Positions 1-62,284 of a stretch of DNA of 64,000 bases are shown here, piece after piece. Numbering within the stretch: position 1 is the stretch's first letter; every line of letters begins with the position of its first letter. Under the pieces are notes generated by a model. That model did not search any database. It had not been told where the DNA came from and saw nothing but the letters and a program-made list of their open reading frames with translations. The DNA is from Raja brachyura (lineage: Eukaryota): the NCBI GenBank assembly GCA_963514005.1, contig OY740804.1:4898001-4962000 (forward strand). The letters run 5' to 3'. The position numbers were made by a program, and so were the translations under genes.

Positions 1-75
1 CGCACCCCTGATCATTCCGAATGTTCACCCGATTCTTCCTGTTCATTTTCTCAAGATGTTTCCTCTCAGTTTCAG

Positions 76-390
76 GTGCGGTGTGGGGGAAGAAATATGT
101 AGGAGGAGTTGTGGGAAGAGCGGTCACAATCGATTGTCACTATGAAGCAGAGTACCGCTCACACACAAAATACTGGTGTCACGGGTGGACTAGCCAGTGT
201 AGAGTTTTAATGGAAACAAATGGGCAACACGGACGGAGAGGAAGAGCATCAATCACAGATAACCCGGCACGAGGAATATTTACTGTGACTGTGGAGGATC
301 TTCGCTCTGGAGATACAGGGTGGTACAGCTGTGGAATTGCTACACCTGACTTGGATCCATTGTTTAACGTTCATCTCCAAGTATCTGACG
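76..390 (+). CDS. Gene A IgV exon, CD300/pIgR-like (MDIR-like) receptor
   Basis: Acceptor tttcag|GT, donor GACG|gtacgt, 315 nt, phase 1-1. VTIDC...KYWC-x6-C...DTGWYSC shows the extra C-C' Cys pair typical of CD300/pIgR/TREM V domains. The leader lies outside the window. Confidence 0.92.
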
Positions 391-1344
391 GTACGTTTAT
401 CAGCGATTGACGACGTCTCCACGACGCATGATCCATGTTTTTTCTCCTAGGAAGGGTCAGGGCAGCACCGATATCCCGAGGCTCCGCAGCAGTGTAGAGA
501 CCTGCGGGAAGCGGGCGGGGGTCGGGAAACCCCACTCATGTTGCTCTCACCCAGTGCGGGCTCGGTCCCACTGAGCGGCCACCCACTTCAAGTGGGACGC
601 TCGGCACATTTTCCTGCCTCTGAACTGTGTTAAATGTCACCCTGTCAGAGGTTTGCATTCCGACTCAAACTAATAATCCGTTGGGAACAGATCACTGAGA
701 AACGAGTGTTACCCGCGGTCTGAATACCCGGAGAATGTTAAACAGGGAATCAGACCCGTGAGTTCAACACACTGCGTTCAATCCTCCCGGGGCAGACCAG
801 CCCGCTCCCCGCTCCCACCTGAGGGGCCAGTCACTCCCTCCCCACCCAGTGGTCTCTCTCTGTGTCTCCCTCTGTCCCGCCAATGCGCCCCCACCCCCAG
901 CAGCCACTCACCACTGCCCACCCACTGCCCGGCAGCCAGCCAGCATCTCCACCTGGCCCAATCTCGGAGGAAATTTGGGTAAAGCTTTCCTAATCAGACC
1001 TTTCAGGAAATTCCGGGCGACCTCCACCTTCCCCGAGTTTCTGGGCTTCTCAGACTGACAATATCTCTCGTTGTCTCCACCCCGATATCAGCACCAATGG
1101 GTTCCCTTCCTGTTGCAGGCCACTTCATCCCAGCACAACTATAGCCTCTCCCTATAGCCACCGAACATTGGACAGGTGTATGACAGGTGAACAAAACCAT
1201 AAGTGCTGGAAGAACATAGCGGGTCAGGTAGCATCTGTGGAGGGAATGGACAAAACCAACTCGAGTCGTGACCCTCTTTCAGACAGATGGAGTGAGGGAG
1301 GAGAAAGCTGGAATTGAGAGATGGGAACGATATCGAGCCTGGTG

Positions 1345-1346
1345 AG

Positions 1347-1381
<35 letters not shown>

Positions 1382-1383
1382 GA
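1345..1383 (+). repeat. (GATA)n microsatellite
   Basis: Pure GATA array. The mirror locus at about 22690-22732 is interrupted. Confidence 0.9.
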
Positions 1384-1961
1384 TGAGGGGATTGATCAAC
1401 AGGCGGGTGGAGTGATATAAGTGAGGAGGAGACCAGATAAGGAGAGAAGAGGAACAGTGAAATGTGAAGCCGGATTGGGGGATCGAGGGGTGGAGGGGAA
1501 CGGGGCGGTATAAAAAGGAGACGGGGGACTCAGAGATGGGAGATGTGACGAGTTTATGGATGTACAAAAGCGGGGATGGTGGAAGGGTGGCTGGGATGGG
1601 GGGGAGCGGTTGGCGATAGTGAGGTATTATTTGAAATCCGTGAATACAATGTTCATACCGTTGCGTTGTCCGATTGTCGAGGGGAATACGAGCCGCTGTT
1701 TCTCTTTCAACATAGTTTTGGCAATGGATGAACCCAAGGACATAAAGGGTGGGATGGGAATGGGAAGGAGACTGAAATGATTAGCAACCAGGATGTCCAG
1801 GCTCGCTTGTGTAAAGGCCGAGGTCATATTGCCAGCACCGAAGGCAGGGGACGAGGTTCGCGTGTACCTCTTCAAAAGTCGAGGTACAAGGGTGCCAGAA
1901 TGGGAGAGTCTTTTATTTTCAGACGTTGACTTTGTATCCATTGTTTGCTCCTTTCCCACAG

Positions 1962-2270
1962 AACCCGTGACTGTTCCTGTGCTTGGATTTTTGTCACCAG
2001 CCAATGTCTCCGGTGTCGGAGGCACAGTGACAGTGTCGTGTAAGTCTGAGCGGGGATCACTTCCCATTAGCTACACCTGGTATGAAAATACCTTAAAGAT
2101 CTCAAATAGCAATAACCTGGATCTACGTTGTCAATCCTTCAAACAACAAAGCCATCAATATTACTGCAAAGCCTCAAATAATCGTGGGACAAGGACCAGT
2201 GAAATGGTCAACGTGGCAGTGCCCAACGTCGGAGCGAATTGCAGTTATGCGGTGCATTTCGGTAACAGTG
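1962..2270 (+). CDS. Gene A IgC2 exon (FcR-like/FCRL-type domain)
   Basis: Acceptor cccacag|, donor G|gtaagt, 309 nt, phase 1-1. EPVTVPVL...VTVSCKSERGSLPISYTWY...YYCKASN. Confidence 0.9.
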
Positions 2271-2907
2271 GTAAGTGCAGGAGGGAATGACTGAATCGCC
2301 AGTTTGATTCCTGGGATATTTTAGTGTTACGGAAAAGATGGATTGGGATGATTCTGAAGACCCCACAAGATTCTGACAGGAAATACATGACTTGATGTTG
2401 AGAGGAATGCTCACAGTAGTTGGGAGTTTGTGGTTAGTGTCACAATAATAAGGATCCATAACTTGGGTCACAGAAGACAAATTTTTTTGTAAACTTTCAG
2501 ACAAATGTTCACCAAATAACCCCGTTAGCTGAAAATTCAAGCTGCTAAAATTCTACCTCCAGCCACGCAAGTTTACTTTGGAGATACAGCATACAGGCCC
2601 GTACGAAGCTTTTCAAAAACGGGGATGGTATGACATGATTACAAAAATATTAATGTGAAATAAGCCTTCATCCGCCTTCCCAGCTGCTGTGACGCTCCAC
2701 CAAGGAACTCTAGATGCTGGTTTATACCAAAGAAGGACAAAATGGTGGAATAACTTAGCAGGTCAGACAGTATCCCTGGATGACATGGATAGGTGACATT
2801 TTGGGTTGAAACCCTTGGGTTCTGACCCGAAACGTCACCTGTTCATTTTCTCCAGGGATGCCACCTGACCTAGCATAACTCCACCATTTTGTATCCTTCT
2901 GCTGATA

Positions 2908-3129
2908 AAAAATAGACAATAGACACTATGTGCAGGAGTAGGCCGTTCAGCCCTTCGAGGCAGCCATTCAATGTGATCATGGCTGATCATCCACAATCAG
3001 TACCCCGTTCCTGCCTTCTCCCCATATCCCCTGACTACTCTATTTTTAAGAGCCCTATCTAGCTCTCTCTTGAAAGTATCCAGAGAATCGGCTTCCACTG
3101 CCCTTTGAGGCAAATAATTCCACACTCCC
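2908..3129 (-). mobile_element. CR1 3' fragment present only in the left arm, flanked by a ~31-bp duplication
   Basis: AACTCCACCATTTTGyATCyTTyTGCTGATA at 2877-2907 and 3130-3160. Confidence 0.75.
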
Positions 3130-3627
3130 AACTCCACCATTTTGCATCTTTTTGCTGATATTTTCTTGTTCCCTGTTGCTCCTCAGCTCCAAATCATAAC
3201 TATTATCCAGCATGTTCAGTCCCTTTCTAACTACTGCATTCATAAGATCCACCCGTAATAACATTGCCCCATCCCTCCAGTAGGTATCTGATCCACTGGA
3301 CTAGATCTCCCTGTACTGGCAAGGCCAGCTATCTGGTCAGAACATCCCCTTGCATTTGTCAGGGCTAAACAGGCTTTGCATTCCCACCAACCCAAGCCCT
3401 TTAAGTGTCCCAGCAGCATCTCAACATCTCTAGAGCTCAAATATGGGACGGAAAGAGAAATTATCAATAAATGTGATCAACAGTTAAGTGTTGGCAGCAG
3501 CAGGAACTTTTTTACACAAAGGGTGGTGGGTGTATGGAACACGCTGCCAGAGGAGGTGGTTGAGGCAGGTACTATTGTAATATTTAAGGAACATTTAGAC
3601 AGGTACATTGATAGGATAGGTTTAGAG

Positions 3628-6135
3628 GTCCAACAAGGCGAATTTAGGGAGCTAGGAGATAAACTTAAAAGTAGGACCTCAAAGGTAATAATCTCTGGAT
3701 TACTGCCAGTGCCACGTGCTAGTCAGAGTAGAAATAGGAGGATATGGCAGATGAATACGTGGCTTGAAAAATGATGCAAGGCGGAGGGATTCAAATTTCT
3801 CGGGCATTGGAACCAGTTCTGGAGGAGGTGGGACCAGCATAAACGGGATGGTCTGCACCTGGGATGGAATGGAATCAATGTCCTTGGGGGAGTGTTTGCT
3901 AGTGCTGTCAGGGAGGATTTAAACTAATGTGGCGGGGGATGGGAGCATGAGCAGAGAGACAGAGGGATGTAAGATGAGGGTAGAAGCAATAGGTAGCAAG
4001 GTGAAAAGTAAACGTAGCAGGCAGAAAAATCCAGGGCAAAAATCAAAAAGGGCCACTTTTCAACATAATTGTATAAGGGGTAAGAGCGTTGTAAAAACAA
4101 GCCTGAAGGCTTTGTGTCTCAATGCAAGGAGCATTCGTAATAAGGTGGATGAGTTGAATGTGCAGATAGTTATTAATGAATATGATATAGTTGGGATCAC
4201 GGAGACATGGCTCCAGGGTGACCAAGGCTGGGAGCTGAACATCCAGGGATATTCAATATTTAGGAGGGATAGACAGAAAGGAAAAGGAGGTGGAGTAGCA
4301 TTGCTGGTTAGAGAGGTGATTAACGCAATAGAAATGAAGGACATTAGCATGGAGGATGTGGAATCGATATGGGTAGAGCTGTGAAACACTAAGGGGCAGA
4401 AAACTCTGGTGGGTGTTGTGTACAGGTTACCTAACAGTAGTAGTGGAGCTGAGGATGGCATCAAACATGAAATTAGAAATGCATGCAACAAAGGTAAAAC
4501 AATTATAATGGGTGACTTCAATCTACATATAGATTGGGTGAATCAAATTGGCAGGGGTGCTGAGGAAGAGGATTTCTTGGAATGTATGCGGGATAGTTTT
4601 CTAAACCAACAAAAAGAACCAACGAGAGAGCAGGCTATTCTAGACTGGGTATTAAGTAATGAGGAAGGGTTAGTTAGCAGTCTTGTTGTGTGTGGCCCCT
4701 TGGGCAAGAGTGACCATTATATGGTTGAGTTCTTCATTAGGATGGAGAGTGACATTGTTAATTCAGAAACAAGGGTTCTGAACTTAAAGAAAGGTAACTT
4801 TGAGGGTATGAGACGTGAATTGGCTAAGATAGACTGGCAAGTGATTCTTAAAGGGTTGACGGTGGATATGCAATGGAAGGCATTTAAAGACTGCATGGAT
4901 GAGCTACAACAATTGTTCATCCCAGTTTGGCAAAATAATAAATCAGGGAAGGTAGTGCATCTGTGGATAACAAGGGAAATCAGGGATAGTATAAAAACAA
5001 AAGATGTGGCATACAAATTAGCCAGAAAAAGCAGCCTACCAGAGGACTGGGAGAAATTCAGAATCCAGCAAAGAGTAGGAGTAAACTGGTCATTTTCAGA
5101 ATGGCAGGCAGTGATTAGTGGGGTACAGCAAGGCTCAGTGCTGGGACACCGGCTATTTACAATATATATTGATCTGGATGAGGGAATTGAATGCAAAATC
5201 TCCAAGTTTGCGGATGACACAAAGCTGGTTGGCAGTGTTAGCTGTGAGGAGGATGCTAGGAGGCTGCAAGGTGACTAGGATAGGTTGGGTGAGTGGGAAA
5301 ATGCATGGCAGATGCAGTATAATGTGGATAAATGTGAGGTTATCCACTTGGGTGGCAAAACCAGGAAAGTAGACTATTATCTGAATAGTGGCCGATTAGG
5401 AAAAGGGAAAATGCAAAGCGACCTGGGTGTCATGGTACACCAGTCGTTGAAAGTAGGCATGCAGGTGCAGCAGGCAGTGAAGAAAGCGAATGGTATGTTG
5501 GCATTCATAGCAAAAGGATTTGAGTACAAGAGCAGGGAGGTTCTACTGCAGTTGGACAGGGTCTTGGTGAGGCCACACCTGGAGTATTGCGTACAGTTTT
5601 GGTCTCCTAATCTGAGGAAAGACATTCTTGCCACAGAGGGAGTACAGAGAAGGTTCACCAGACTGTTACGTGGGATGGCAAGACTTCCATATGAAGAAAG
5701 ACTGGATAGACTCGGCTTGTAGTCGCTGGAATTTAGAAGATTGAGGGGGGATCTTATAGAGACTTACAAAGTTCTTAAGGGGTTTGACAGGCTAGATGCA
5801 GGAAGATTGTTCCTGATGTTGGGGAAGTCCAGAACAAGGGGTTACGGTTTAAGGATAAGGGGGAAGTCTTTTAGGACCGAGATTAGAAAATCATTTTTCA
5901 CACTGAGTGGTGAATCTGTGGAATTCTCTGTCACAGAAGGTAATTGAGGTCAGCTCATTGGCTATATTTAAGAGGGGGTTCAATGTGGCCCTTGTGGTTA
6001 AAGGGATCAGGGGGTATGGAGAGAAGGCAGGTACAGGATACTGAGTTGGATGATCAGCCATGATCATATTGAATGGCGGTGCAGGCTCGAAGGACCGAAT
6101 GGCCTACTCATGCACCTATTTTCTATGTTTCTATG
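3628..6135 (+). mobile_element. CR1 LINE, degenerate and internally deleted, in a gene A intron
   Basis: ORF1 esterase end (DGLHL), APE endonuclease (NARSIRNK, ITETWL, MGDFN, SDH), jump to the RT C-terminus (FADDTK), TTCTATGT tail. Stops and frameshifts present. Confidence 0.92.
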
Positions 6136-6754
6136 GTGAGCCCGATATCTGAGGAAGGATGTGCTGGTTCTGGAGAGGGTCCAGAGGAGGTTTACAAGAA
6201 TGATCCCAGGAATGAGTGGGTTAACATATGATGAGTGTTTGACAGCACTGGGCCTGTACTCGCTGGAGTTTAGAAGGATGAGGGAGGCCCTCATTGAACT
6301 TTACTGAATATGGAAAGGCCTGGATAGAGTTGATGTGGAGAAGATGTTTCCACTAGTGGGGTAATCTAGGGCCAGAGGTCATAGCCTCCGAATTAAAGAG
6401 CGTTTCTTTAGGAAGGAATTCTTAAGTAAGAGGGTAGTAAATCTGAGGAATTTATTGCCACAGAAGGTTGTGGAGGCCAAGTCAATGGATATTTTAAGGC
6501 GGAGATAGTACGGGAGTCAGGGGTTATGAGCAGAAGGCAGGAGAATAGGGTTAGGAGGGAGAGATAGATCAGCCGTGATTGAATGACGGAGTAGACTTGA
6601 TGGGCCGAATGGCCTAATTCTAATCCTATCACTTATGAACATGAACTGATGAAGTCGATGTGCCAAATGGCCTAATTCTGCTCCTATGACTTCTGCACTT
6701 ATGATTGCAAGTGAAAAGCAGGTGATGTTGAATTGTATTTCCTTGACCCAACAG

Positions 6755-6875
6755 AACCTGAAAAGACTGGTAGCACTTCTAAGCATGAACCAATGATGAC
6801 TACACCGTTTGCAAGTACAGAAAAAAAATCCAATGATAATCAAAATGACACCACCCGATCCACTTGCACGGAATG
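6755..6875 (+). CDS. Gene A Ser/Thr-rich stalk exon
   Basis: Acceptor ccaacag|, weak donor TG|gtacaa, phase 1-2, which fits both neighbours. EPEKTGSTSKHEPMMTTPFASTEKKSNDNQNDTTRSTCTE. Confidence 0.72.
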
Positions 6876-7997
6876 GTACAATAATGTTATTACTGCTGTT
6901 GTGATTGGCTCTGCTTCCTTCTGAGAATAAATTGGAAGAGAATTTCCTCTTTCATTGGCTAGTTAAGTGCCTCAGAGTATTGACTTCAATCTATTCAAAT
7001 GTTGAGATCGGAGTGCGCACAAGAATTGAAAGGAATGATCTAAGATCCAGCATGCACTCAATGGGCCAAATGGACTCTAGCTTTTTTTTGGTTTTTAGTT
7101 TTAGAGAAACAGCACGGACACAGGCCCTTCCACCCTACAAGTCCATGACAGCCTTAGATCAGTCTGAAGAAGTGTCTCAACACGAAAAACGTCATCTGGT
7201 CCTTCTCTCCAGAGGTGCTGTGTGACCCGCTGAGTTACTCCAGCTTTTTGTGTCGATCTTCGATCCCCCCGTTAACACTAGTTCTATGTTGTACCACTTT
7301 ATTGTTCAATCCCTACACATTCAGGATTGAACCCAGGTCTCTGGCGCCTTAAGAGAGCTGCTCTATCAAATGTGCCAATGTAATGAAAAGAAGATGAGAA
7401 AGTAATTGTTGATTCATCTCTTGATTTTGTACACCTCCATAAGATCACCCCTCGTCCTCCTGCTCTCCAAGGAATAATGACCTAGCTTGCTCAACCTTTC
7501 CCTATAGCTCAGGCCCTCGAGTCCCAGCACCATCTTCGTAAATCTTCTCTGCACCCTTTCCAGCTTGACAAAATCTTTCCTATAACATGGTGACCAGAAA
7601 TGCACACAATACCCTAAATGTGATGAGGTTCCAGGATTATGCAGAATTACATCTGGTCACATAGGATTGAAGGCACAGAAAAGATCAACTAGGCTGGTCC
7701 ATGCTGGTGTTTACAGACCACTCGTCACTTCTCCCATCTTTTCCTATCTAACTTTATCAACGCTAGACACAAAATGCTGGAGTAACTCAGCGAGTCAGGC
7801 AGCATCTCTGAAGAACATGGATAGGTGAGGTTTTGGGTCGAGATCCTGGACGGTGGAATTTCCCAGCTGAACTCGCTGGGCTCTGTTGCTGTACCCTGCT
7901 CCATGTAGAGATTTCACAGCAATCAGGATATGAATGTTTCCAACACAAACTAGTCTGTTTTCTCCCACTGATTCTGTATCTTTCCCCCTTTGCTCAG

Positions 7998-8088
7998 TTC
8001 CATGACATGGAAGGTGGGACGCTGGCTGTACTTTGCTCTGCTTGGGATCTGCAGTATCTCAGTCTCATTGTTCACAAGTATAAGGAAG
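7998..8088 (+). CDS. Gene A transmembrane exon with TM arginine
   Basis: Polypyrimidine tract plus gctcag|, donor AAG|gtatgt, phase 2-0. SMTWKVGRWLYFALLGICSISVSLFTSIRK. Confidence 0.85.
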
Positions 8089-8848
8089 GTATGTTTTGCA
8101 GAGATCATCAGAATCGCTGACTGCTTCCAAATGATGTCCATTAATACTTTCAAACATGCTGATAAAATAAAACAAACGGAAAGTGTTTAGATAAAGTATT
8201 TCACAAATTCGGGCCAAACCAATGCTCTACGAAAAAGATATCAATAGGCCTTGACAAGATGTTTGTGTGCTTGATGTAGATGTTGTACAGTCATTGAAGC
8301 AGAGAGAAATACAGCATGGAAACAGGCCCTTTGGCCCACTGTAACCATGCAGGCCATCTTATCTGACCCCCAGTTTCCTCCCCTCTATTTTCAGTTTGAA
8401 GAAGGGTCCCGACCTGAAATGTCACCCATCCTTTTTCCCCAAAGATCTTGCCTGACTCGCTGAGTTACTCCAGCACTTTGTGTCTATCAGGCCATTGATC
8501 ACCCGTACGCATTAGTTCTGTGTTATCCCATTCTCACGTCCCAAATCCCAACACACTCGGGGAAATTCACATTGGCCAAGTAACCTGTAAACCCGCAAGT
8601 CTTTGGGATGTGGGAGGAAACCAGAGCTCGCGGAGAAAACCCACATGGCCACAGCGAGAACATGCAAACTCCACACAGATAGCACCAAAGTCAAAATCCA
8701 AGCAAATTCTTGGAAGCTGTGAGGCAGCAGCTCTATCAGTTGCATCACTGTGCCAATTGGAAGCAGAATTCTGTTGTGAGTGGCCTTGTGAAATAAAGTA
8801 CAATTCCCTGAGTTAATGAATCTGATGACTTCAACATTTTTTTTACAG

Positions 8849-8884
8849 GGACCCAATGAACCGAAACCTCACAGCTTGCCGTAG
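8849..8884 (+). CDS. Gene A terminal exon, short cytoplasmic tail
   Basis: Acceptor ttttttttacag|, phase 0, GPNEPKPHSLP-TAG. No tyrosine motif. Confidence 0.75.
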   Translation, partial: GPNEPKPHSLP

Positions 8885-11608
8885 AAGGCAGAATGAAGAT
8901 CCACTGGTGATAGTGACTGAGAAACTACTCTCCAATGATCGTTATTATTTTGAATGAATTAATAGAAACATAGAAAATAGCCAGCACCGCCATTCAACAT
9001 GATCATGGCTGATCATCCAACTCAGTATCTTGTTCCTGCCTTCTCTCCATACCCCCTGATCCTTTTAGCCACAAGGCCCACATCTAACTCCCTTTTAAAT
9101 ATAGCCAATTAAGTGGCTTCAATTACCTTCTTTGGCAGAGAATTCCACAGATTCACCACTCTCTGTGTGAAAAAAAAAATTCTCATCTCAGTCCTAAAAG
9201 ACTTCCCCCTTATCCTTAAACTGTGATCCCTTGTTCTGGACTTCCCCAACATCGGGAACAATCTAGCCTGTCCAACCCCTTAAGAATTTTGCAAGTTTCT
9301 ACAAGATCCCCCTCAATCTTCTAAATTCTAGCGAGCACAAGCAATGAATGAATGAATACTTTATTGTCACATTTGACAAATCACAGTGAAATTCTTTGCT
9401 TGCCAACCCAATGTATGCAAATAGTCACCCATAAAGGGTGCTGACAAAGTGTTTTTCATTTTGCTTTCATAATAGACTGCACAGAATTAATGTTTCTTCT
9501 GCTAAAACAATTAACTTAGTTCACACATTATTCAATAGACAATAGGTGCAGGGGTAGGCCCTTCGAGCCAGCACCGTCATTCAATGTGGTCATGGCTGAT
9601 CATCCCCAATCAGTTCCCCGTTCCTGCCTTCATAACTTTTTCCTCGTCCTCCAGGTTCAAGAACAGCTTCTCAGCAGCAACAATTAGGCTTTTGAACACT
9701 GCACACTAACCTCAACTATCAAGTATGGACAGTGTTTGGTTGCACTGAAGACATCAGTTTGTTTTTGTCCTTATTGGACATTAACTAATTCATTTTTGTA
9801 CATTATACATTAACTGTGTGCATTGTGTTTACAAGCACAATGAGGGGAATAGATAGGGTATGTGTTGGAAGGAACTGCAGATGCGTGTTCAAACCGAAGA
9901 TAGACACAAAAACCTAGAGTTACTCATCGGGTCAGGCAGCACCTCTGGAGCAAAGGGATAGGTGATGTTTTGAGCCGAGACCTTTCTTCGGACAGAGGTA
10001 GGGGAAAGGGAAACAAGGGAAACAAGTCTCTTACCCAGAGTATTGGAATCAAGACTCAGGGGGCAAGGCTTCAGGTGAAAGCGAAAAGTTTTAATAGGAT
10101 CCTGAGGGGCATCATTTTTTTACACAGTGAGTTGTGGGAGTATGGAATGAGCTAACTGATGAGGTAGTTGAGGCAGGTGCTACAAAAACACTTTAAAGGC
10201 ATTTGGACAGTTACATGAATAGGACTGGTTTAGAAGGAGATGGACCAAACGCTGGCAGGAGGAACTAGAGTAGATGGGGCATCTTGGTCGACGTTGGCAA
10301 GTTGGGCTGAAGGGTCTGTTTCCATGCTGTATAACTCCATAAATCTCCAGATTCGTTGTGCTACTCAAACAAAGCATTATATTGCCCCCCTGTCGGTACA
10401 TATGACAATCAAGCACTCTTGACGCAGGCGTTTAACAAACCAAAATCAACCAAATGTCCTCGACATGGATTCAGTTCCAGTGCATAAAAAAAGTTATGAG
10501 AAGAATATACCTTGCACTATATCTGTTTTGAGTACTGTTGATATCAATCTTGTAATTGGAGATAGTGTGATTGTCATTGGTTCTTTATAAAAAGATATGT
10601 TATTGTTAATGTTTAATGTTTTAGGTGTCATTCCTAATGTCACTGTATGTCACATTGCACTTGTGGGCGGAGCACCAAGGCAAATTCCTTGTATGTGAAT
10701 ACTTGGCCAATAAACCTATTCATTCATAAACCCATTCATTCATCATTCATTCATAAGATTAGTCAAGTTATATTGAGGCAAGGAAATAAAATTAAGTCTC
10801 AACTGTTTTCACATGCAGTGAATAAAGATAACAAGATTGTCAGATGGAACCCATTGCTTTGAGTAAATGCCAATTAGCTTGAGAGATATGGTGACTATTA
10901 TTCAGTGGAATTGGACGTCTTAGTTGAGTTTAGTTTAGAGACACAGCATGAAACAGGACCTTTGGCCCACCTAGTTCACGCCAATCAGCGATCCCACCCG
11001 CACACCAGCACTATCCTGCACACACTAGGGTCAAATTACAGTTTACCAAAGCCAATTAACCTACAAACCTGCACGTCTTTGGAGTGTGGGAAGAAACCAA
11101 AGATCTCAGAGAAAACCCACTTGGTCATGGGGAGAACATACAAACTCCGTACAGACAGCACCCGTAGTCAGGATCGAACCCGTGTCTCTGGCGCTGAAAT
11201 GAAGGCAGCAACTCCAGCACTGTACACTCGTACACCCTATGTATCATTTATATTTTTGTGTATCTACGTGTATGTGCCTGTGATGTTGCCACAAGCGTGA
11301 TTTTCATTGTACCTGCACCTCACCATACGTGCATATAAGAATAAGCCAGACTTGACTTGAAAACTGCTCAGCAAAGTATATTACAATGATGTTCTCATGA
11401 GAAAAAGTACTTCCAGAACAATTGATCTGATGGGATGTCATAACTTATAGTTTCCCTCTTCTAAATATTCTTCACAGTTAAAACAATGAGGCATTTCCAG
11501 GATTGAATACAATTTATTCCTCATGACTGCAATGTCATGCTACACAACACAAAATAATAAGTCATTGCTATGAATGCTAGCAACATTGATTAAATGGCAC
11601 CTCTACTG

Positions 11609-12127
11609 AGTGAATAGATTCTTGCTATTGAGGGAGTGCAGCTTAGGTTTACAAGGTTAATTCCCGGGATGGTGGGATTGTCATATGCTGAGAGAATGGA
11701 GCAGCTGGGCTTGTACACTCTGGAGTTCAGAAGGATGAGAGGGAATCTCATTAAAACATATAAGATTGTTAAGGGCTTGGACACACTAGAGGCAGAAAAC
11801 ATGTTCCCGATGTTGGGGAACCAGGGGCCACAGTTTAAGAATAAGGAGTAAGCCATTTAGAATGGAGACGAGGAAACACTTTTTCTCACAGAGAGTGGTG
11901 AGTCTGGAATTCTCTGCCTCAGAGGGCGGTGGTGGCAGGTTCTGTGGATGCTGATTCTGTGGATTCTGTGGAAGAGAGAGCTAGATAGGGCTCTTAAAAA
12001 TAATGGAGTCAGGGGATATGGGGAGAAGGCAGGAACGGGGTACTGATTGGGGATGATCAGCCATGATCACATTGAATGGCGGTGCTGGCTTGAAGGGCCT
12101 ACCTCTGCACCTATTGTCTATTGTCTG
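11609..12127 (+). mobile_element. CR1 3' fragment spanning the spacer/right-arm boundary
   Basis: ORF2 C-terminal peptide RFTRLIPGM...LGLYTLEFRRMRG and ATTGTCT tail. Confidence 0.85.
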
Positions 12128-13574: not shown

Positions 13575-13665
13575 CTTCCTTGTACTTGTGAACAATGAGA
13601 CTGAGATACTGCAGATCCCAAGCAGAGCGAAGTACAGCCAGCATCCCACCTTCCATGTCATGGAA
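13575..13665 (-). CDS. Gene B transmembrane exon (Arg replaced by Cys)
   Basis: Mirror of 7998-8088 with intact splice sites. SMTWKVGCWLYFALLGICSISVSLFTSTRK. Confidence 0.82.
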
Positions 13666-14778
13666 CTGAGCAAAGGGGGAAAGATACAGAATCAGTGGGA
13701 GAAAACAGACTAGTTTGTGTTGGAAACATTCATATCCTGATTGCTGTGAAATCTCTGCATGGAGCAGGGTACAGCAACAGAGCCCAGGGAGTTCAACTGG
13801 GAAATTCCACCGTCCAGGATCTCGACCCAAAACTATCCATGTTCTTCAGAGATGCTGCCTGACTCGCTGAGTTACTCCAGCATTTTGTGTCTAGCGTTGA
13901 TAAAGTTAGATAGGAAAAGATGGGAGAAGTGACGAGTGGTCTGTAAACACCAGCATGGACCAGCTTAGTTGATCTTTTCTGTGCCTTCAATCCTATGTGA
14001 TCAGATGTAATTCTGCATAATCCTGGAACCTCATCACATTTAGGGTATTGTGTGCATTTCTGGTCACCATGTTATAGGAAAGATTTTGTCAAGCTGGAAA
14101 GGGTGCAGAGAAGATTTCCGAAGATTGCTGGGACTCGAGGGCCCGAGCTATAGGGAAAGGTTGAGCAAGCTAGGTCATTATTCCTTGGAGAGCAGGAGGA
14201 CGAGGGGTGATCTTATGGAGGTGTACAAAATCAAGAGATGAATCAACAATTACTTTCTCATCTTCTTTTCATTACATTGGCACATTTGATAGAGCTGCTC
14301 TCTTAAGGCGCCAGAGACCTGGGTTCGATCCTGAATGTGTAGGGATTGAACAATAAAGTGGTACAACATAGAACTAGTGTTAACGGGGGGATCGAAGATC
14401 GACACAAAAAGCTGGAGTAACTCAGCGGGTCACACAGCACCTCTGGAGAGAAGGACTAGATGACGTTTTTCGTGTTGAGACACTTCTTCAGACTGATCTA
14501 AGGCTGTCATGGACTTGTAGGGTGGAAGGGCCTGTTTCCGTGCTGTTTCTCTAAAACTAAAAACCAAAAAAAGCTAGAGACCATTTGGCCCATTGAGTGT
14601 ATGCTGGATCTTAGATCATTCCTTTCAATTCTTGTGCGCACTCCGATCGCAACATTTGAATCGATTGAAGTCAATACTCTGAGGCACTTAACTAGCCAAT
14701 GAAAAAGGAAATTCTCTTCCAATTTATTCTCATAAGGATGCAGAGCCATTCACAACAGCAGTAATAACATAATTGTAC

Positions 14779-14899
14779 CATTCCGTGCAAGTGGATCGGG
14801 TGGTGTCATTTTGATTATCATTGGATTTTTTTTCTGTACTTGCAAACGGTGTAGTCATCATTGGTTCATTCTTAGAAGTGCAACCAGTCTTTTCAGGTT
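14779..14899 (-). CDS. Gene B stalk exon
   Basis: Mirror of 6755-6875. EPEKTGCTSKNEPMMTTPFASTEKKSNDNQNDTTRSTCTE. Confidence 0.7.
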
Positions 14900-15517
14900 C
14901 TGTTGGGTCAAGGAAATACAATTCAACATCACCTGCTTTTCACTTGCAATCATAAGTTCAGAAGTCATAGGAGCAGAATTAGGCCATTTGGCACATCGAC
15001 TTCATCAGTTCATGTTCATAAGTGATAGGATCAGAATTAGGCCATTCGGCCCATCAAGTCTACTCCGTCATTCAATCATGGCTGATCTATCTCTCCCTCC
15101 TAACCTTATTCTCCTGCCTTCTGCTCATAACCCCTGACTCCCGTACTATCTCCGCCTTAAAATATCATTGACTTGGCCTCCACAACCTTCTGTGGCAATA
15201 AATTCCTCAGATTTACTACCCTCTTACTTAAGAATTCCTTCCTAAAGAAACGCTCTTTAATTCGGAGGCTATGACCTCTGGCCCTAGATTACCCCACTAG
15301 TGGAAACATCTTCTCCACATCCACTCTATCCAGGCCTTTCCATATTCAGTAAAGTTCAATGAGGGCCTCCCTCATCCTTCTAAACTCCAGCGAGTACAGG
15401 CCCAGTGCTGTCAAACACTCATCATATGTTAACCCACTAATTCCTGGGATCATTCTTGTAAACCTCCTCTGGACCCTCTCCAGAACCAGCACATCCTTCC
15501 TCAGATATCGGGCTCAC

Positions 15518-18030
15518 CATAGAAACATAGAAAATAGGTGCATGAGTAGGCCATTCGGTCCTTCGAGCCTGCACCGCCATTCAATATGATCATGGCTGAT
15601 CATCCAACTCAGTATCCTGTACCTGCCTTCTCTCCATACCCCCTGATCCCTTTAGCCACAAGGGCCATATTGAACTCCCTCTTAAATATAGCCAATGAAC
15701 TGGCCTCAACTACCTTCTGTGGCAGAGAATTCCACAGATTCACCACTCTGTGTGAAAAATGATTTTCTCATCTCGGTCCTAAAAGACTTCTCCCTTATCC
15801 TTAAACTGTAACCCCTTGTTCTGGACTTCCCCAACATTAGGAACAATCTTTCTGCATCTAGCCTGTCGAACCCCTTAAGAATTTTGTAAGTCTCTATAAG
15901 ATCCCCCCTCAATCTTCTAAATTCCAGCGAGTACAAGCCAAGTCTATCCAATCTTTCTTCATATGGAAGTCTTGCCATCCCAGGTATCAGTCTGGTGAAC
16001 CTTCTCTGTACTCTGTGGCAAGAACGTCTTTCCTCAGATTAGGAGACCAAAACTGTACGCAATCCTCCAGGTGTGGCCTCACCAAGACCCTGTCCATCTG
16101 CAGTAGAACCTCCCTGCTCTCTAGTACTCAAATCCTTTTGCTATGAATGCCAACATACCATTCGCTTTCTTCACTGCCTGCTGCACCTGCATGCCTACTT
16201 TCAACGATTGGTGTACCATGACACCCAGGTCGCCTTGCATTTCCCCTTTTCCTAATCGGCCGCCAATCAGATAATAGTCTACTTTCCTGTTTTTGCCACC
16301 CAAGTGGATAACCTCACATTCATCCACATTATACTGCATCTGCCATGCATTTGCCCACTCACCCAACCTATCCTAGTCACCTTGCAGCCTCCTAGCATCC
16401 TCCTCACAGCTAACACGGCCAACCAGCTTTGTGTCATCCGCAAACTTGGAGATTTTGCATTCAATTCCCTCATCTAGATCATTAATATATATTGTAAATA
16501 GCTGGGGCCCCAGCACAGAGCCTTGAGGTACCCCACTAATCACAGCCTGCCATTCTGAAAATGACCCGTTTACTCCTATTCTTTGCTGGATTCTGAATTT
16601 CTCCCAGTCCTCTGGTAGGCTGCTTTTTCTGGCTAATTTGTATGCTTCATCTTTTGTTTTGATACTATCCCTGATTTCCCTTGTTATCCACAGATGCACT
16701 ACCTTCCCTGATTTATTATTTTACCAAACTGGGATGAACAATTGTTGTAGCTCATCCATGCAGTCTTTAAATGCCTTCCATTGCATATCCACTGTCAACC
16801 CTTTAAGAATCACTTGCCAGTCTATCTTAGCCAATTCACGTCTCATACCCTCAAAGTTACCTTTCTTTAAGTTCAGAACCCTTGTTTCTGAATTAACAAT
16901 GTCACTCTCCATCCTAATGAAGAACTCAACCATATAATGGTCACTCTTGCCCAAGGGGCCACGCACAACAAGACTGCTAACTAACCCTTCCTCATTACTC
17001 AATACCCAGTCTAGAATAGCCTGCTCTATCGTTGGTTCCTCTAAATGTTGGTTTAGAAAACTATCCCGCATACATTCCAAGAAATCCTCTTCCTCAGCAC
17101 CCCTGCCAATTTGATTCACCCAATCTATATGTAGATTGAAGTCACCCATTATAATTGTTTTACCTTTGTTGCATGCATTTCTAATTTCATGTTTGATGCC
17201 ATCCCCAGCTCCACTACTACTGTTAGGTAGCCTGTACACAACTCCCACTAGCGTTTTCTGCCCCTTAGTGTTTCGCAGCTCTACCCATATCGATTCCACA
17301 TCCTCCATGCTAATGTCCTTCCTTTCTATTGCGTTAATCACCTCTCTAACCAGCAATGCTACTCCACCTCCTTTTCCTTTCTGTCTATCCCCCCTGAATA
17401 TTGAATATCCCTGGATGTGCAGTTCCCAGCCTTGGTCACCCTGGAGCCATGTCTCCGTGATCCCAACTATATCATATTCATTAATAACTATCTGCACATT
17501 CAACTCATCCACCTTATTACGAATGCTCCTTGCATTGAGACACAAAGCCTTCAGGCTTGTTTTTACAACACTCTTACCCCTTATACAATTATGTTGAAAA
17601 GTGGCCCTTTTTGATTTTTGCCCTGGATTTTTCTGCCTGCTATGTTTACTTTTCACCTTGCTACCTATTGCTTCTACCCTCATCTTACATCCCTCTGTCT
17701 CTCTGCTCATGCTCCCATCCCCCTGCCACATTAGTTTAAATCCTCCCTGACAGCACTAGCAAACACTCCCCCAAGGACATTGATTCCATTCCATCCCAGG
17801 TGCAGACCGTCCTGTTTGTGCTGGTCCCACCTCCTCCAGAACTGGTTCCAATGCCCGAGAAATTTGAATCCCTCCGCCTTGCATCATTTTTCAAGCCTCG
17901 TATTCATCTGCCATATCCTCCTATTTCTACTCTGACTAGCACGTGGCACTGGTAGTAATCCAGAGATGTTTACCTTTGAGGTCCTACTTTTAAGTTTATC
18001 TCCTAGCTCCCTAAATTCGCCTTGTTGGAC
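15518..18030 (-). mobile_element. CR1 LINE, mirror copy in a gene B intron
   Basis: Same internal deletion as 3628-6135. Endonuclease ORF 16721..17731 is open for 336 aa. Confidence 0.92.
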
Positions 18031-20996
18031 CTCTAAACCTATCCTATCAATGTACCTGTCTAAATGTTCCTTAAATATTACAATAGTACCTGCCTCAACT
18101 ACCTCCTCTGGTAGCGTGTTCCATACACCCACCACCCTTTGTGTAAAAAAGTTCCTGCTGCTGCCAACACTTAACTGTTGATCACATTTATTGATAATTT
18201 CTCTTTCTGTCCCATATTTGAGCTCTGGAGATGTTGAGATGCTGCTGGGACACTTAAAGGGCTTGGGTTGGTGGGAATGCAAAGCCTGTTTAGCCCTGAC
18301 AAATGCAAGGGGAAGTTCTGACCAGAGAGCTGGCCTTGCCAGGACAGGGAGATCTAGTCCAGTGGATCAGATACCTACTGGAGGGATGGGGCAATGTTAT
18401 TACAGGTGGATCTTATGAATGCAGTAGTTAGAAAGGAGCTTGCTGAGACTGAACATGCTGGATAATAGTTATGATTTGGAGCTGAGGAGCAACAGGGAAC
18501 AAGACGTTTCGGGTCAGAACCCAAGGTGACGTTTCGGGTCAGAACCCAAGGGGTTCAACCCAAAATGTCACCTTATCATGTCATCCAGGGATACTGTCTG
18601 ACCTGCTGAGTTATTCCACCATTTTGTCCTTCTTTGGTATAAACCAGCATCTAGAGTTCCTTGGTGGAGCGTCACAGCAGCTGGGAAGGCGGATGAAGGC
18701 TGCAGCAGAAAAGGATCTCCGGTCGTCTTGGACTCCATGACACTGGATCCCGACCCAGATCTGTCAAGGACCGTGGTGTGGCTGTCTGTGAACCAGTCTC
18801 CTTACGTTAAACAAAGTCACGCACAGTTGTCCTCCATATAAGGAATAACATACTGGCGACACCCATGGTCAGCCATAACTGAGGGGGTCTAAAAAGAAGA
18901 GTTCTTTATTATCAGATATCAGCAGAAGTTGTTGCTGGGTGTCCGAAAAGCTGTACTGAAATAGAGATTGGCTTTCTATTATTTGGGATGGTTGTAATTG
19001 AGATAATAAGTAGATTATTATGTACAATTAATATATAATAGCACACGAGTAGGTGACGTTTTGGATCTGGACCTTCTTCAGATATATAATGGGTGGTGGG
19101 GAGAGAAAGCTGGAAGAGAGGTACCTAGCAAATGATAGGTGGATACGACTGGGGGGGGGGGTGGGGGTATTTGATTGGAAAATTGTTGTGCAAAGACAGA
19201 GATGAAATGACAAAAGGCTGTGGGATAAAGAGTTAGGGAGAGAAGAGAAGTGAAATTTGAAGTCAGTAGAAGTGAATTAGGTGGCATAGAAACATAGAAA
19301 ATAGATGCAGGAGGACGCCATTCAGTTCTTGGAACCAGCACCGCCATTCAATATGATCATGTCTGATCAGTACCTCGTTCTGGCTTTTTCCCCATATCCC
19401 TTGATTCCCTTAGCCCAAAGAGCTAAATCAAACTCTCTCTTCAGTGAATTGGCCTCCACTGCCTTCAGTGGCAGAGAACTCCACGGATTCACAGCTCTCT
19501 GGCTGAAAATGTGTTTCCTTATCTCAGTCCAAAATGGACTACCCCTTATTTTTAAACTGTGACCCCTGGTTCTGGACTCCTCCAACATCGGGGACATTTT
19601 CCCTGCATCTACCCTGTCCAATACTCTAAGAATTTTATATGTTTCTGTAAGATCCCTTCTCATCCTTCTAAATTCCAGCGAATACAAGCCCTGTTGGCCC
19701 ATTCTTTCATCATATCTCAGTCCCGCAATCTCGGGAATTAACCTGGTTAATTTCTAAGCTGCACTCCCTCAATAGCAATAATGTCCTTCCTTAAATTGGA
19801 AGACCAAAATTGCACACCATTCTCTAGGTGCGGTCTCACCTGGGCCCTGTGGAACTCTGTGGACTCTGAATTTCTCCCAGACCTCTGATAGGCTGCTTTT
19901 TCTGGCTAATTTGTATGCTTCATCTTTTGTTTTGATACTATCCCTGATTTCCCTTTTTATCCACGGATGCACTACCTTCCCTGATTTATTATTTTGCCAA
20001 ACTGGGATGAACAATTGTTGTAGTTCATCCATGCAGTCTTTAAATGCCTTCCATTGCATGTCCACCGTCAACCCTTTAAGAATCACTTGCCAGTCTATCT
20101 TGGCCAATTCACGTCTCATACCCTCAAAGTTACCTTTCTTTAAGTTCAGAACCCTTGTTTCTGAATTAACAATGTCACTCTCCATCCTAATGAAGAACTC
20201 AACCATATTATGGCCACTCTTGCCCAAGGGGCCACGCACAACAAGAAACGTCACCTATTCATATTCCCCACAGATGCTGCCTGACCCGCTGAGTTACTCC
20301 CGCACTTTGTGTCTATTTTCCCTTAACCCATCTGCCCAAGCCCACTCTCCCCCCTCCTTTCCTATGTTCCTTTCCACCCATAAACCTCTCTCTGCCTTTA
20401 CATTTCACTCCTCTTTCAAATCTGCTCTACTTATCTACATGCATTTTTCTTCTTAACTTTTTAGTCATAGAATGATGCAGTGTGGAAACAGGCCCTTCAG
20501 CCCAACTTGCCCACACCGACCAACATGTCCCATCTATGTTGGTCGGTGTGGGCACTATCCATGTACGTGTCCAATGTCTCTTAAACATTAGGATAGTCCC
20601 AGCCTTAACTACCTCATCTGGCAGCTCGTTCCATACACCCACCACCCTTTGTGTGAAAAAGATTCCTATTAATTTCTGAAATATTAGTCATACATTTGGT
20701 GCAGAAATGCTGCAAAAAATAAGGGTCAGAATACATCAGACAGCATCTAAAACCCCTGAGCTTCCAAGGCCCTTAAGCAGGCCCTGGACCCCGTCATCGA
20801 GGGACTTCCCGCTTCATGCTCATGGTGTGCGCAGCGCGCACATTATTTCACATTAATATTTTTGCAATCCGGTCATACCACCCCCCTTTTTGAAAAGCTT
20901 CGTACGGGCCTGTATGCTGTATCTCTAAAGTAAACTTGTGTGGCTGGAGGTAAAATTTTAGCAGCTTGAATTTTCGGCTAACGGGGCTATTTGTGT

Positions 20997-21755
20997 ACAT
21001 CGAAACATAGAAATTAGGTGCAGGAGTAGGCCATTCGGCCCTTCGAGCCTGCACCGCCATTCAATATGATCATGGCTGATCATCCAACTCAGTATCCCGT
21101 CCCTGCCTTCTCTCCATACCCTCTGATCCCCTTAGCCACAAGGGCTACATCTAACTCCCTCTTAAATATAGCCAATGAACTGGCCTCAACTACCCTCTGT
21201 GGCAGAGAGTTCCAGAGACCCACCACTCTCTGTGTGAAAACATTCCTTCTCATCTCGGTCCTAAAGGATTTCCCCCTTATCCTTAAGCTGTGACCCCTTG
21301 TCCTGGACCTCCCCAACATCGGGAACAATCTTCCTGCATCCAGCCTGTCCAACCCCTTAAGAATTTTGTACGTTTCTATAAGATCCCCTCTCAATCTCCT
21401 AAATTCTAGAGAGTATAAACCAAGTCTATGCAGTCTTTGTTCATAAGACAGTCCTGACATCCCAGGAATCAGTCTGGTGAACCTTCTCTGCACTCCCTCT
21501 ATGGCAATAATGTCCTTCCTCAGATTTGGAGACCAGAACTGCATGCAATACTGTAGGTGTGGCCTCACCAAGACCCTATACAACTGAAGTAGAACCTCCC
21601 TGTTCCTATACTCAAATCCTTTTGCTATGAAAGCTAACATACCATTCGCTTTCTTCACTGCCTGCTGTACCTGCTTGCCTACTTTCAATGACTGGTGTAC
21701 CATGACACCCAGGTCGCGCTGCATCTCCCCTTTTCCTATTCGGCCTCCATTTATC
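20997..21755 (-). mobile_element. 5'-truncated CR1 insertion present only in the right arm
   Basis: ORF 21089..21724 is the CR1 ORF2 C-terminus plus tail. The left arm at about 2510 has the uninterrupted site. Confidence 0.88.
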
Positions 21756-21992
21756 TGAACATTTGTCTGAAAGTTTACAAAATAATTTGTCTTCTGTGAC
21801 CTAAGTTATGGATCCTTATTATTGTGACACTAACCACAAACTTCCAACTACTGTGAGCATTCCTCTCAACATCATGTATTTCCTGCCAGAATCTTGTGGG
21901 GTCTTCAGAATCATCCCAATCCATCTTTTCCCGTGACACTAAAATATCCCAGGAATCAAACTGGCAATTCAGTCATTCCCTCCAGCACTTAC

Positions 21993-22301
21993 CACTGTTA
22001 CCTAAATGCACCGCATAACTGCAAGTCGCTCCGGTGTTGGGCACTATCACGGTGACCATTTCACTGGTCTTTGTCCCACGATTATTTGAGGCTTTGCAGT
22101 AATATTGATGGCTTTGTTGTTTGAAGGATTGACAACGTAGATCCAGGTTATTGCTATTTGAGATCTTTAAGGTATTTTCATACCAGGTGTAGCTAATAGG
22201 AAGTGATCCCCGCTCAGACTTACACGACACTGTCACTTTGCCTCCGTCACAGGAGACATTGGCTGGTGACAAAAATCCAAGCACAGGAACAGACACGGGT
22301 T
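21993..22301 (-). CDS. Gene B IgC2 exon (FcR-like domain)
   Basis: 309 nt, AG/GT intact, open frame. EPVSVPVL...SCDGGKVTVSCKSERGSLPISYTWY...YYCKASN. Confidence 0.88.
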
Positions 22302-23686
22302 CTGTGGGAAAGGAGAAAACAATGGATACAAAGTCAACGTCTGAAAATAAAAGACTCTCCCATTCTGGCACCCTTGTACCTCGACTTTTGAAGAGGTACA
22401 CGCGAACCTCGTCCCCTGCCTTCGGTGTTCGCAATATGACCCCGGCCTTTACACAAGCGAGCCTGGACATCCTGGTTGCTAATCATTTCAGTCTCCTTCC
22501 CATTCTCATCCCACCCTTTATGTCCTTGGGTTCATCCATTGCCAAAACTATGTTGAAAGAGAAACAGCGTATCCCCCTCGACAATCGGACAATGCAACGG
22601 TATGAACATTGTATTCATGGATTTCATCTTCTCTCCTTATCTGGTCTCCTCCTCACTTATAACACTCCACCTGTCTGTTGATCAATCCCCTCATCTCTCT
22701 CTCTCTATCTCTCTATCTCTGTATCTATCTCTCGCCAGGCTCGATACCGTTCCCATCTCTCAATTCCAGCTTTCTCCTCCCTCACTCCGTCTGTCTGAAA
22801 GAGGGTCACGACTCGAGTTGGTTTTGTCCATTCCCTCCACAGATGCTACCTGACCCGCTATGTTCTTCCAGCACTTATGGTTTTGTTCACCTGTCATACA
22901 CCTGTCCAATGTTCGGTGGCTATAGAGAGAGGCTATAGTTGTGCTGGGATGAAGTGGCCTGCAACAGGAAGGGAACCCATTGGTGCTGATATCGGGGTGG
23001 AGACAACGAGAGATATTGTCAGTCTGAGAAGCCCAGAAACTCGGGGAAGGTGGAGGTCGCCTGGAATTTCCTGAAAGGTCTGATTAGGAAAGCTTTACTC
23101 AAATTTCCTCCGAGATTGGGCCAGGTGGAGATGCTGGCTGGCTGCCGGGCAGTGGGTGGGCAGTGGTGAGTGGCTGCTGGGGGTGGGGGCGCATTGACAG
23201 GACAGAGGGAGAGGGAGAGAGAGACCGCTGGGTGGGGAGGGAGTGATTGGCCCATGAGGTGGGAGCGGGGAGCGGGCTGGCCTGCCCCGGGAGGAATGAA
23301 CGCAGTCTGTTGAACTCACGGGTCTGATTCCCTGTTTAATATACTCCGGGTATTCAGACCGCGGGCAACACTTGTTTCTCAGTGATCTGTTCCCAACGGA
23401 TTATTAGTTTGAGTTGGAATGCAAACCTCTGACAGGGTAACATTTAACATAGTTCAGAGGCAGGGAATGTGCTGAGCATCCCACTTGAAGTGGTTGGCCG
23501 CTCAGTGGGACAGAGCCCGCACTGGGTGAGAGCAACATGAGTGGGGTTTCCCGACCCCCGCCCGCTCCCCGCAGGTCTCTACACTGCTGCGGAGCCTCGG
23601 GATATCGGTGCTGCCCTGACCCTTCCCGGAGAAACATGGATCAGGCTTTTTAGTGGAGACGTCAAGTCAATCGCTGATAAACGTAC

Positions 23687-24001
23687 CGTCAGATACTTGG
23701 AGATGTACGTTAAACAATGGATCCTTGCCAGGTGCAGCAATTCCACAACTGTACCACCCTGTATCTCCAGAGCGAAGATCCTCCACAGTCACAGTAAATA
23801 TTCCTCGTGTCCGGTTATCTGTGATTGACACTCTTCCACTCCGTCCATGTTCCCCATTTGTTTTCACTAAAACTCTACAATGTTCAGTCCACCCGTGACA
23901 CCAGTATTTTGGGCGTGAGCGGTACTCTGCTTCATAGTGACAATCGACTGTGACCGCTCTTCCCACAACTCCTCCTACACGGACCTTCCCCCACACCGCA
24001 T
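23687..24001 (-). CDS. Gene B IgV exon, CD300/pIgR-like
   Basis: 315 nt, AG/GT intact, open frame. KYWCHGWTEHC...DTGWYSC. No convincing leader exon was found upstream. Confidence 0.9.
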
Positions 24002-25029
24002 CTGAAACTGAGAGGAAACATCTTGTGAAAATGAACAGGAAGAATCAGGTGAACATTCGGAATGATCAGGGGTGCGCTGGACAACATTCATCCCCCCACC
24101 AACACTGGACCAGATCATCCATCACTGCATGGACTTGCCCTCGTTCCAATTAGAAGCGTCTCTGCCATCTCCAACCCAGTGGTAGGGAACAACATCTCAT
24201 ATTTCCCGTCGGCAGATTACACCCCAATGGTATGAATATTGATATCTCTAACTTCAAGTAAACCTTGCATCCCCTCTCTGTCCATCCCTCTCCCACCCAA
24301 GTTGAACCAGCTTCTTGTTGAATCTCATTGCCTGTAACTAGTTCTCACTTACTACACAGCTAGCAATGGCCTGTTTCCTTTATCATTGTTACTTTTTTTT
24401 ACATATCTTTAATTCATTTGTTCTATATCTCTCTACACAACCATCTATACATCTTCCATTTTCCCCGACTCTCAGTCTGTAGAAGGGCCTAGATCTCGAA
24501 ATGGCACCTATTCCTGAGCTCCATAGATGCTGCTGAGTTACTCCAGTATTTTGTGTCTATCTTCCAAACGGACATTGTCTCTTCTGTCCCCTCAGCATTG
24601 CCGGCGTTTCTGTTGCTTGTCACGCTGCTGGGAGCGGCATCTCCCGGTCCTTGTGTCGGCTGGTGGCTTCCCAGATCTAGCAGTTGTGAATGGAAGGAGA
24701 CCGCAGAGTACAATATTCGGTAAATTACCTCACTTCAGCTACCAACTAAATGGGTCGCTTTAATGACCGAGTGAAAAATACGTCCAGGAAAATATATGGG
24801 ATTCTGTATAGTGATCCCCTCTCACTCACAATCAGTATCACAACAGCTTCAGGATTAAGGTTGGGCCTTGCTGAATTAGACAAAAACACAACAGAAGGCA
24901 AAACAAAATGAAAAGTAAATGGTTACTTATTGCGAGAACGCTGTTGACCAACACTCTAGCCACGAGGATTAGAGAACTAAAAAAATAAACGGCTAAATTG
25001 TTGTCAATTTGAGAATTTTAAGCGTAACG

Positions 25030-62280: not shown

Positions 62281-62284
62281 TTTT

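Follow-up and report, generated by a model that had tools for sequence, protein, structure and literature searches.

MDIRs (modular domain immune-type receptors) are multigenic activating and inhibitory receptors related to CD300, TREM, FCAR and pIgR (PMC3031540). In the clearnose skate, Rostroraja (Raja) eglanteria, MDIR2 is a protein of 416 amino acids (aa) in which an immunoglobulin (Ig) V domain is followed by a C2 domain. It is of the inhibitory type, with an uncharged transmembrane (TM) segment and a long tail that carries IMYAAV, DTYARV and PIYASV, which resemble ITIMs (immunoreceptor tyrosine-based inhibitory motifs). The MDIR2 counterparts in Leucoraja and Rhinoraja also have an uncharged TM segment and a long, ITIM-like tail. 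The subject of the present analysis is a stretch of 64,000 nucleotides (nt) from Raja brachyura (GenBank assembly GCA_963514005.1, contig OY740804.1, positions 4,898,001 to 4,962,000 of the forward strand), called the window below, whose left end contains two receptor genes, A and B, one in each arm of a palindrome and arranged tail-to-tail. Taken as a whole, the evidence makes it probable that the two genes arose by a young inverted duplication of an activating-type MDIR gene, and that A has remained typical of the family while B is the derived copy.

For comparison, the most useful relative is a 305-aa protein from the thorny skate, Amblyraja radiata, named 'CXADR-like membrane protein' (XP_032898776.1). 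It has the same five-part architecture as gene A, the same exon phases, the arginine of the TM sequence VGRW and the end GPNEPKPHSLP, and it is about 76% identical to gene A in the V domain, 82% in C2, 81% in the stalk, 93% in the TM segment and 100% in the tail. It differs in coming from another species or in being a paralog, and its 90%-identity cluster consists of one sequence, with no near-identical annotated twin. MDIR2 shares the V-then-C2 order with A and B, but the membrane end of A and B, comprising stalk, TM segment and tail, is of the XP_032898776.1 type, with a short tail and with Arg (A) or Cys (B) in the membrane.

Mammalian CD300 (CMRF35-like) receptors and the first domain (D1) of pIgR have the same V type as A and B, with a second, C-C′ disulfide. 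CD300 pairs also follow the logic in which similar ectodomains are joined either to a charged TM segment and a short tail in the activating member, or to ITIMs in the inhibitory member. However, mammalian CD300 has one V domain and no C2, whereas both skate genes have an FCRL-like C2 domain between V and stalk, and pIgR has two to five V-type domains and a long transcytosis tail in place of the one V exon and 11-residue tail exon found here. Fc alpha RI and CHIR-AB1, whose TM helix has an Arg close to its outer end, resemble gene A in having a positive TM residue and a short, motif-free tail, a functional analogy rather than a demonstrated homology of the TM segments. The positive residue of these two receptors mediates the interaction with FcR gamma or DAP12 (PMC4016189).

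Structure and family of the two receptor genes

The exon model of A and B was transferred from XP_032898776.1, whose residues map in order onto the window, and all exons were examined and searched singly, by reference. Gene A, on the plus strand, consists of a V exon (76-390, phase 1-1), a C2 exon (1962-2270, phase 1-1), a stalk exon (6755-6875, entered in phase 1 and left in phase 2), a TM exon (7998-8088) and a last coding exon (8849-8884) that encodes GPNEPKPHSLP and the stop codon. Its V exon encodes a V-set domain of the pIgR/CD300 type with the extra C-C′ cysteine pair, while the C2 exon encodes an FCRL-type Ig domain (Pfam Ig_3/Ig_2) and the membrane-proximal segment. The corresponding exons of gene B, all on the minus strand, are V (23687-24001), C2 (21993-22301), stalk (14779-14899), TM (13575-13665) and the last coding exon (12779-12814), which reads GPNEPKPHSSP before the stop. 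The stalk exon was overlooked by a blind splice-site scan owing to its weak donor (ATG/GTACAA) and was located by homology, using tblastn with residues 235-265 of XP_032898776.1 (81%). Exon phases are consistent throughout (1-1, 1-1, 1-2, 2-0, 0), the three split codons are GAA, GAA and TGT in A and B alike, the five exons (872 coding nt) are open in both copies, and all ten splice sites are conserved and identical between them. The tail exon codes for 11 residues, and the cytoplasmic end of gene A is 16 residues long, without motifs. In each of the arms, six-frame reading and Pfam recognise one V-set and one Ig C2 domain, with V-set E-values of 3.9e-11 in A and 5.3e-11 in B. The preliminary description of this DNA had proposed an inverted duplication of at least 24 kb with two frame-consistent genes, each of the order V, C2, stalk, TM and short tail, across a 2.4-kb spacer. 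The layout is borne out by self-comparison, by the open exons and by the ten splice sites, and the architecture by Pfam and by homology to XP_032898776.1.

With the V open frame as query, HMMER retrieved 2,617 relatives from 1.8 billion representative proteins. When compared with solved structures, the V domain comes nearest to pIgR D1 and CD300f/CD300a, with NKp44 and TREM2 next (phmmer E-value of 2.6e-20 for CD300f and domain E-value of 1.5e-13 for pIgR D1), and it has the four-cysteine pattern C20/C34/C41/C85. The best solved match of the C2 domain is to the repeated domains of FCRL5 (6e-07 per domain), so that the best PDB matches are those expected from the earlier reading of the genes as CD300/pIgR-like V domains joined to FcR-like C2 domains. 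The search with XP_032898776.1 gave dozens of batoid proteins auto-annotated as pIgR-like, CMRF35-like or FCRL-like, and also, from the clearnose skate, 'Modular domain immune-type receptor 2' and '5'. The MDIR membership suggested in the preliminary description is supported by the identity of gene A to MDIR2 of that species, which is 80% in V and 76% in C2.

MDIRs have an N-terminal V domain of the CD300/TREM/pIgR kind, a second Ig domain of the C2/I type, either a charged TM segment with a short tail or an ITIM-bearing tail, and genes that lie in multigene clusters. The V and C2 domains of A and B are of these kinds, and further pIgR/CD300-like V exons lie in the same window. At the membrane end, gene A fits through its TM arginine, while gene B lacks both a charged TM residue and an ITIM. 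Judged by their sequences, A and B appear to be activating-type members of the MDIR family, hitherto unannotated in the collections searched. Among proteins of 168-534 aa, none was closer than 67% to XP_032898776.1 except one partial, Logan-derived protein of 191 aa that is 80% identical to XP_032898776.1 over 40% of it. In the search for proteins of the same genome, made with the V frame and covering 73-231 aa, no match exceeded 69% identity.

The leader exon of A, separate in the gene model, must lie to the left of the window. Upstream of gene B, at a distance of 2.9-6 kb and oriented like it, is a dead V exon of this family that contains in-frame stops; its two pieces (29752-29931 and 26881-26934, minus strand) are 2.8 kb apart. 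A leader contiguous with the V exon, starting at an in-frame ATG at A 21 (MFTRFFLFIFSRCFLSVSG followed by AVW), was considered and rejected, the sequence being most likely intron, because codon 4 of this frame is TGA in B, because the dead V exon shares the pyrimidine tract and lacks an ATG, and because the family leader MWIPILLICSLPVS is quite unlike MFTRFFLFIFSRCFLSVSG. The stretch before V is open and signal-peptide-like in A (21-75, plus strand); in B (24056-24002, minus strand) it has a CpG change of CGA to TGA at codon 4. Translation of an unspliced A transcript from ATG 21 could occur in principle. The in-phase leader that lies closest to gene B on its upstream side, at a distance of about 16.9 kb, is an exon at 40876-40974 on the minus strand (MAVGQGEFTHQKRPRSRGTVALLVLVAVGLTP, phase-1 donor). 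This exon was rejected as the leader of B: it is in phase, but belongs to a different pIgR-like subfamily (91% to relative P0097), and no matching V exon follows it downstream within the window. A and B have identical read-through products past each donor, and their splice sites are also the same. No B-specific secreted form was found, and nothing supports the earlier suggestion that only B might be secreted.

The palindrome

Large palindromes that carry gene pairs, such as the ampliconic palindromes of the primate Y chromosome and the inverted blocks of LILR-type clusters, have inverted arms, each with one copy of the gene, and a short unique spacer. The arms of the Y palindromes are more than 99.9% identical through ongoing conversion. 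The skate arms are unlike a palindrome maintained in this way, since they are 2.4-7% divergent and lack long identical tracts.

Self-BLAST and MAFFT delimit an arm A (1-9631, plus strand), a unique spacer of 2,393 nt (9632-12024) and an arm B (12025-24076, minus strand). Position 1 of A pairs with position 24076 of B, and arm A is truncated by the left edge of the window, so that 24 kb is the minimum size of the palindrome. Segments 1-1454, 1632-2511 and 3164-9631 of A match 24076-22623, 22626-21756 and 18504-12025 of B, with 94-97% identity. In the global alignment, the greater length of arm B is due to two LINE-derived (long interspersed element) blocks that are specific to it, a 2.1-kb insertion in the intron between C2 and stalk (18702-20842) and a 0.76-kb reverse-transcriptase fragment (20994-21755). 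Arm A has an extra segment at 1451-1631 and another of about 0.3 kb at 2841-3163, the latter a repeat with a further copy at 47668-47899. At least four insertions or deletions of repeat sequence are specific to one arm. A LINE endonuclease/reverse-transcriptase remnant in the C2-stalk intron (3923-5719, plus strand; Pfam Exo_endo_phos) is common to both arms, its B copy being at 16124-17755 on the minus strand, and must predate the duplication. The spacer is a mosaic of repeats whose two halves have no homology to each other; it includes a SINE-like (short interspersed) element at 10920-11222, present in at least ten copies in the window, and a reverse-transcriptase fragment at 11606-11942. 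A further repeat (11761-12131) spans the boundary of arm B, and the homology of the arms ends abruptly within this copy.

The differences between the arms have a transition:transversion ratio of 1.6, with one-third of the transitions at CpG, and there are 22 insertions or deletions in 8.8 kb, 19 of them of 10 nt or less. This mutation spectrum, together with the arm-specific repeat insertions and deletions, indicates evolved copies rather than sequencing error. An assembly artefact, in which the assembly has fused, head to head, two haplotypes or two distant paralogs of a single locus and no palindrome exists in the animal, would nevertheless have some basis in the difficulty of assembling immune gene clusters and in two runs of N (25345-25508 and 26133-26291), which lie 1.3-2.2 kb upstream of the gene B side of the palindrome and the first of which starts within 1.3 kb of arm B. 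These are the closest such runs, however, and both arms and the spacer form a single stretch free of N. The arm divergence of 2.4-7% and the four transposon-sized insertions or deletions greatly exceed the usual allelic difference, fold-back read artefacts give near-identical arms without a spacer where here there is a unique spacer of 2.4 kb, and an arm boundary inside a repeat copy is what a real rearrangement would give. We regard such an artefact as very unlikely. The inverted segmental duplication is real in the sequence and fairly young, as the preliminary description had supposed of a young local duplication, and it lies within a batoid cluster of pIgR/CD300-like receptor genes.

Divergence of copy B from copy A

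Divergence between the arms has a single change-point after A 880, with 7.0% in A 1-880 and 2.4% beyond (0 of 2,000 permutations, p<0.0005). When the V exon is excluded, the rate to the left of 880 is still 5.9% (p=0.001). The high-divergence block (76-880, plus strand; B counterpart 24001-23197) takes in the V exon and runs on for about 490 nt through the 5′ half of the intron that follows. Since the block includes intron, the excess divergence of V is not due to protein-level selection alone. It reflects a history of the V-exon block that differs from that of the rest of the arms, either conversion from another paralog or an older duplication. In B, a cluster of five bases has changed from AAATA to GTCCG (matching A 93-97), as polarised with the dead V exon as outgroup, a pattern suggestive of a templated event.

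Over the remaining 8 kb of the arms, the longest identical run is 215 nt, compared with 234 nt by chance (p=0.6), and heterogeneity of divergence is borderline (p=0.054). Because no identical tracts are found beyond chance, recent arm-to-arm conversion, which according to the preliminary description the palindrome would allow, is not shown.

The V exons differ by 28 nt and 17 amino acid changes, besides a G/D difference at the split first codon, and the C2 exons by 13 nt and 10 amino acid changes; in stalk, TM segment and tail together there are five replacements and one silent change. By the Nei-Gojobori method, the rates of replacement (dN) and silent (dS) change are 0.100 and 0.067 in V (dN/dS 1.5) and 0.053 and 0.014 in C2 (dN/dS 3.7), neither ratio being significant, and no comparison of replacement with silent sites is significant. 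Against local non-coding sequence, V replacements stand at 9.3% versus 5.7% (p=0.09) and those of the other exons at 4.0% versus 2.4% (p=0.05; best, 0.0497), both borderline. Fifteen of the 17 V replacements could be polarised with 84 related V domains, giving about 11 derived in B and about four in A; the dead V exon (29752-29931), used as a DNA outgroup, agrees that B is the derived copy in V. The majority of the 17 (13) fall in the BC, C-C′, C′-C″, DE and FG loops, an approximate assignment based on an alignment with pIgR D1 and on the confident strands of a poor AlphaFold2 model of V (pLDDT, the model's confidence score, 60).

These figures could reflect positive diversifying selection on both copies, which would then bind different ligands, with B having a charge-independent partner or acting as a surface competitor. 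The dN/dS values of V and C2, the concentration of V replacements in loop regions and the intact reading frames and splice sites are all in the direction expected of selection. However, no test is significant, the intron beside V is as diverged as the silent sites, so that the V difference is mostly a matter of history, and with the structural model so poor the loop positions are approximate. Selection of this kind is therefore a rather unlikely explanation of the locus as a whole. Of the earlier proposal that the pair is specialising, the difference in V surface and the TM residue of Arg in one copy and Cys in the other are borne out; specialisation itself and relaxed constraint are indistinguishable, dN/dS being non-significant.

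The TM difference lies in a single codon, CGC (Arg, 8020-8022) in A and TGC (Cys, 13643-13641) in B. The sequence W-x-V-G-R-W is present in all 18 relatives with this type of TM segment, from Amblyraja, Rhinoraja, Hypanus, Hemitrygon and Mobula, and this constancy marks the cysteine of B as a derived loss through a CpG transition. Cysteines also differ elsewhere. Gene A has lost the cysteine at position 17 of C2 (NVSC to NVSG), which 23 of 29 relatives carry, but retains the probable partner of this cysteine in NCSY. Both C2 cysteines are still present in gene B, which gains one in the stalk (Ser to Cys) and the one in the TM segment. Unpaired cysteines in A and B might affect dimerisation.

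Evolution of the pair within its cluster

The sequence upstream of gene B contains other members of the cluster and a number of repeats. A further receptor gene on the minus strand (43976-48479), with pIgR/CD300-like V exons at 48222-48479 and 46035-46280 and an Arg-type TM exon at 43976-44095, confirms that the window lies within a receptor cluster. An LTR (long terminal repeat) retrotransposon at 32507-37221 on the minus strand has two LTRs of 204 nt (32507-32710 and 37018-37221) that are 100% identical, and a single open frame of 1,407 aa with reverse transcriptase, RNase H and integrase, which is Ty3/gypsy-like; identical LTRs and an open frame suggest a very recent insertion. The SINE-like repeat of the spacer, about 280 nt long, recurs in at least ten other places in the window with 72-84% identity. 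At the right end, in 60001-64000, G+C falls sharply to 0.27, compared with about 0.45 in the remaining window; this segment has internal repeats (60299-60577/62613-62890 and 61922-62276/62890-63244) and a run of N (62484-62612).

In the scheme that we consider probable, inverted duplication would have given two tail-to-tail copies, each with a leader, V and C2 domains, a Ser/Thr-rich stalk, a TM segment and the 11-residue end. Copy A would have remained family-typical, its ectodomain about 80% identical to those of the inhibitory, ITIM-bearing receptors of the MDIR2 type. It is pictured as a ligand-binding V domain raised on a C2 spacer and a glycosylated stalk, with its TM arginine near the outer leaflet. 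By analogy with Fc alpha RI and CHIR-AB1, this charge may recruit an adaptor bearing an immunoreceptor tyrosine-based activation motif (ITAM), through which A would signal as the activating half of a paired-receptor system. For copy B, gene conversion from another member of the family is the likeliest source of the V block, which is about 0.8 kb long and has three times the divergence of the remaining arm; alternatively, the block may have escaped an older arm-to-arm homogenisation. This event would have altered about 11 residues, mostly in loops aligned with complementarity-determining region (CDR) 1, CDR2, DE and CDR3 of pIgR D1. A single CpG transition replaced the TM arginine of B by cysteine, which should uncouple B from the adaptor. 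B is predicted to be either a non-signalling, competitor or decoy receptor at the membrane, or a gene that is just beginning to decay; function is favoured by intact frames and splice sites and by replacement rates at least equal to the local neutral rate, and decay by the loss of an invariant residue and by a leader that was not found in the window.

Several observations weigh against this scheme. The left limit of the diverged block is 75 nt from the edge of the window, which makes conversion from a third paralog inseparable from an old duplication with homogenisation of the inner arms. The family-type leader (MWIPILL...) was searched for through the whole window and not found for B, and no protein of the Raja brachyura genome corresponds to A or B among the protein collections searched. 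A dN/dS above 1 that is not significant fits decay as well as selection. Finally, a survey of 2014 has the FcR gamma chain, pIgR and FCRL appear with the bony fishes (PMC4016189), so that any adaptor partner in the skate is putative.

Some of these points lead to the possibility that the duplication is real but has left B, or both copies, as an unexpressed relic in decay, with the replacement-rich divergence due to neutral drift and the change from Arg to Cys an early disabling step. B would in that case owe its missing leader exon, its lost invariant residue and its larger share of derived changes to the absence of constraint, of which a dN/dS not significantly different from 1 would be the sign; the dead V exon just upstream (29752-29931, 26881-26934) shows decay within the cluster, and no matching protein or transcript-derived sequence is present in the databases searched. 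Yet at 2.4-9% divergence both copies still have every exon open and each of the ten splice sites intact, and replacements, both in V and in the other exons, are slightly above the expectation from drift. We consider a relic possible, though clearly less probable than a derived B beside a family-typical A.

A more elaborate version of the latter would make the pair a working two-gene module. The arms outside V would formerly have been homogenised, which would explain the step from 7% to 2.4%, while the V exons diversified outside the converted zone, and B would by one CpG change have become an adaptor-independent competitor or decoy of A, a third state of a paired receptor that is neither activating nor inhibitory. 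We think this unlikely; if true, a third receptor state would have been reached in a single mutational step.

Overall, the locus is a case of the ordinary birth-and-death evolution of an immune multigene family, seen at an early stage, and the palindromic layout is not an unprecedented mode of growth for such families. Through it, the MDIR/CD300-like receptors of cartilaginous fishes gain two family members that had not been annotated. It also offers a snapshot of paired-receptor turnover, in which an inverted duplication, a probable exchange of a V block and the loss of the putative adaptor-binding charge by a CpG transition are combined at a single locus. If both genes are expressed, A and B would form a natural pair for testing the role of the TM arginine and its adaptor in an early-branching jawed vertebrate.

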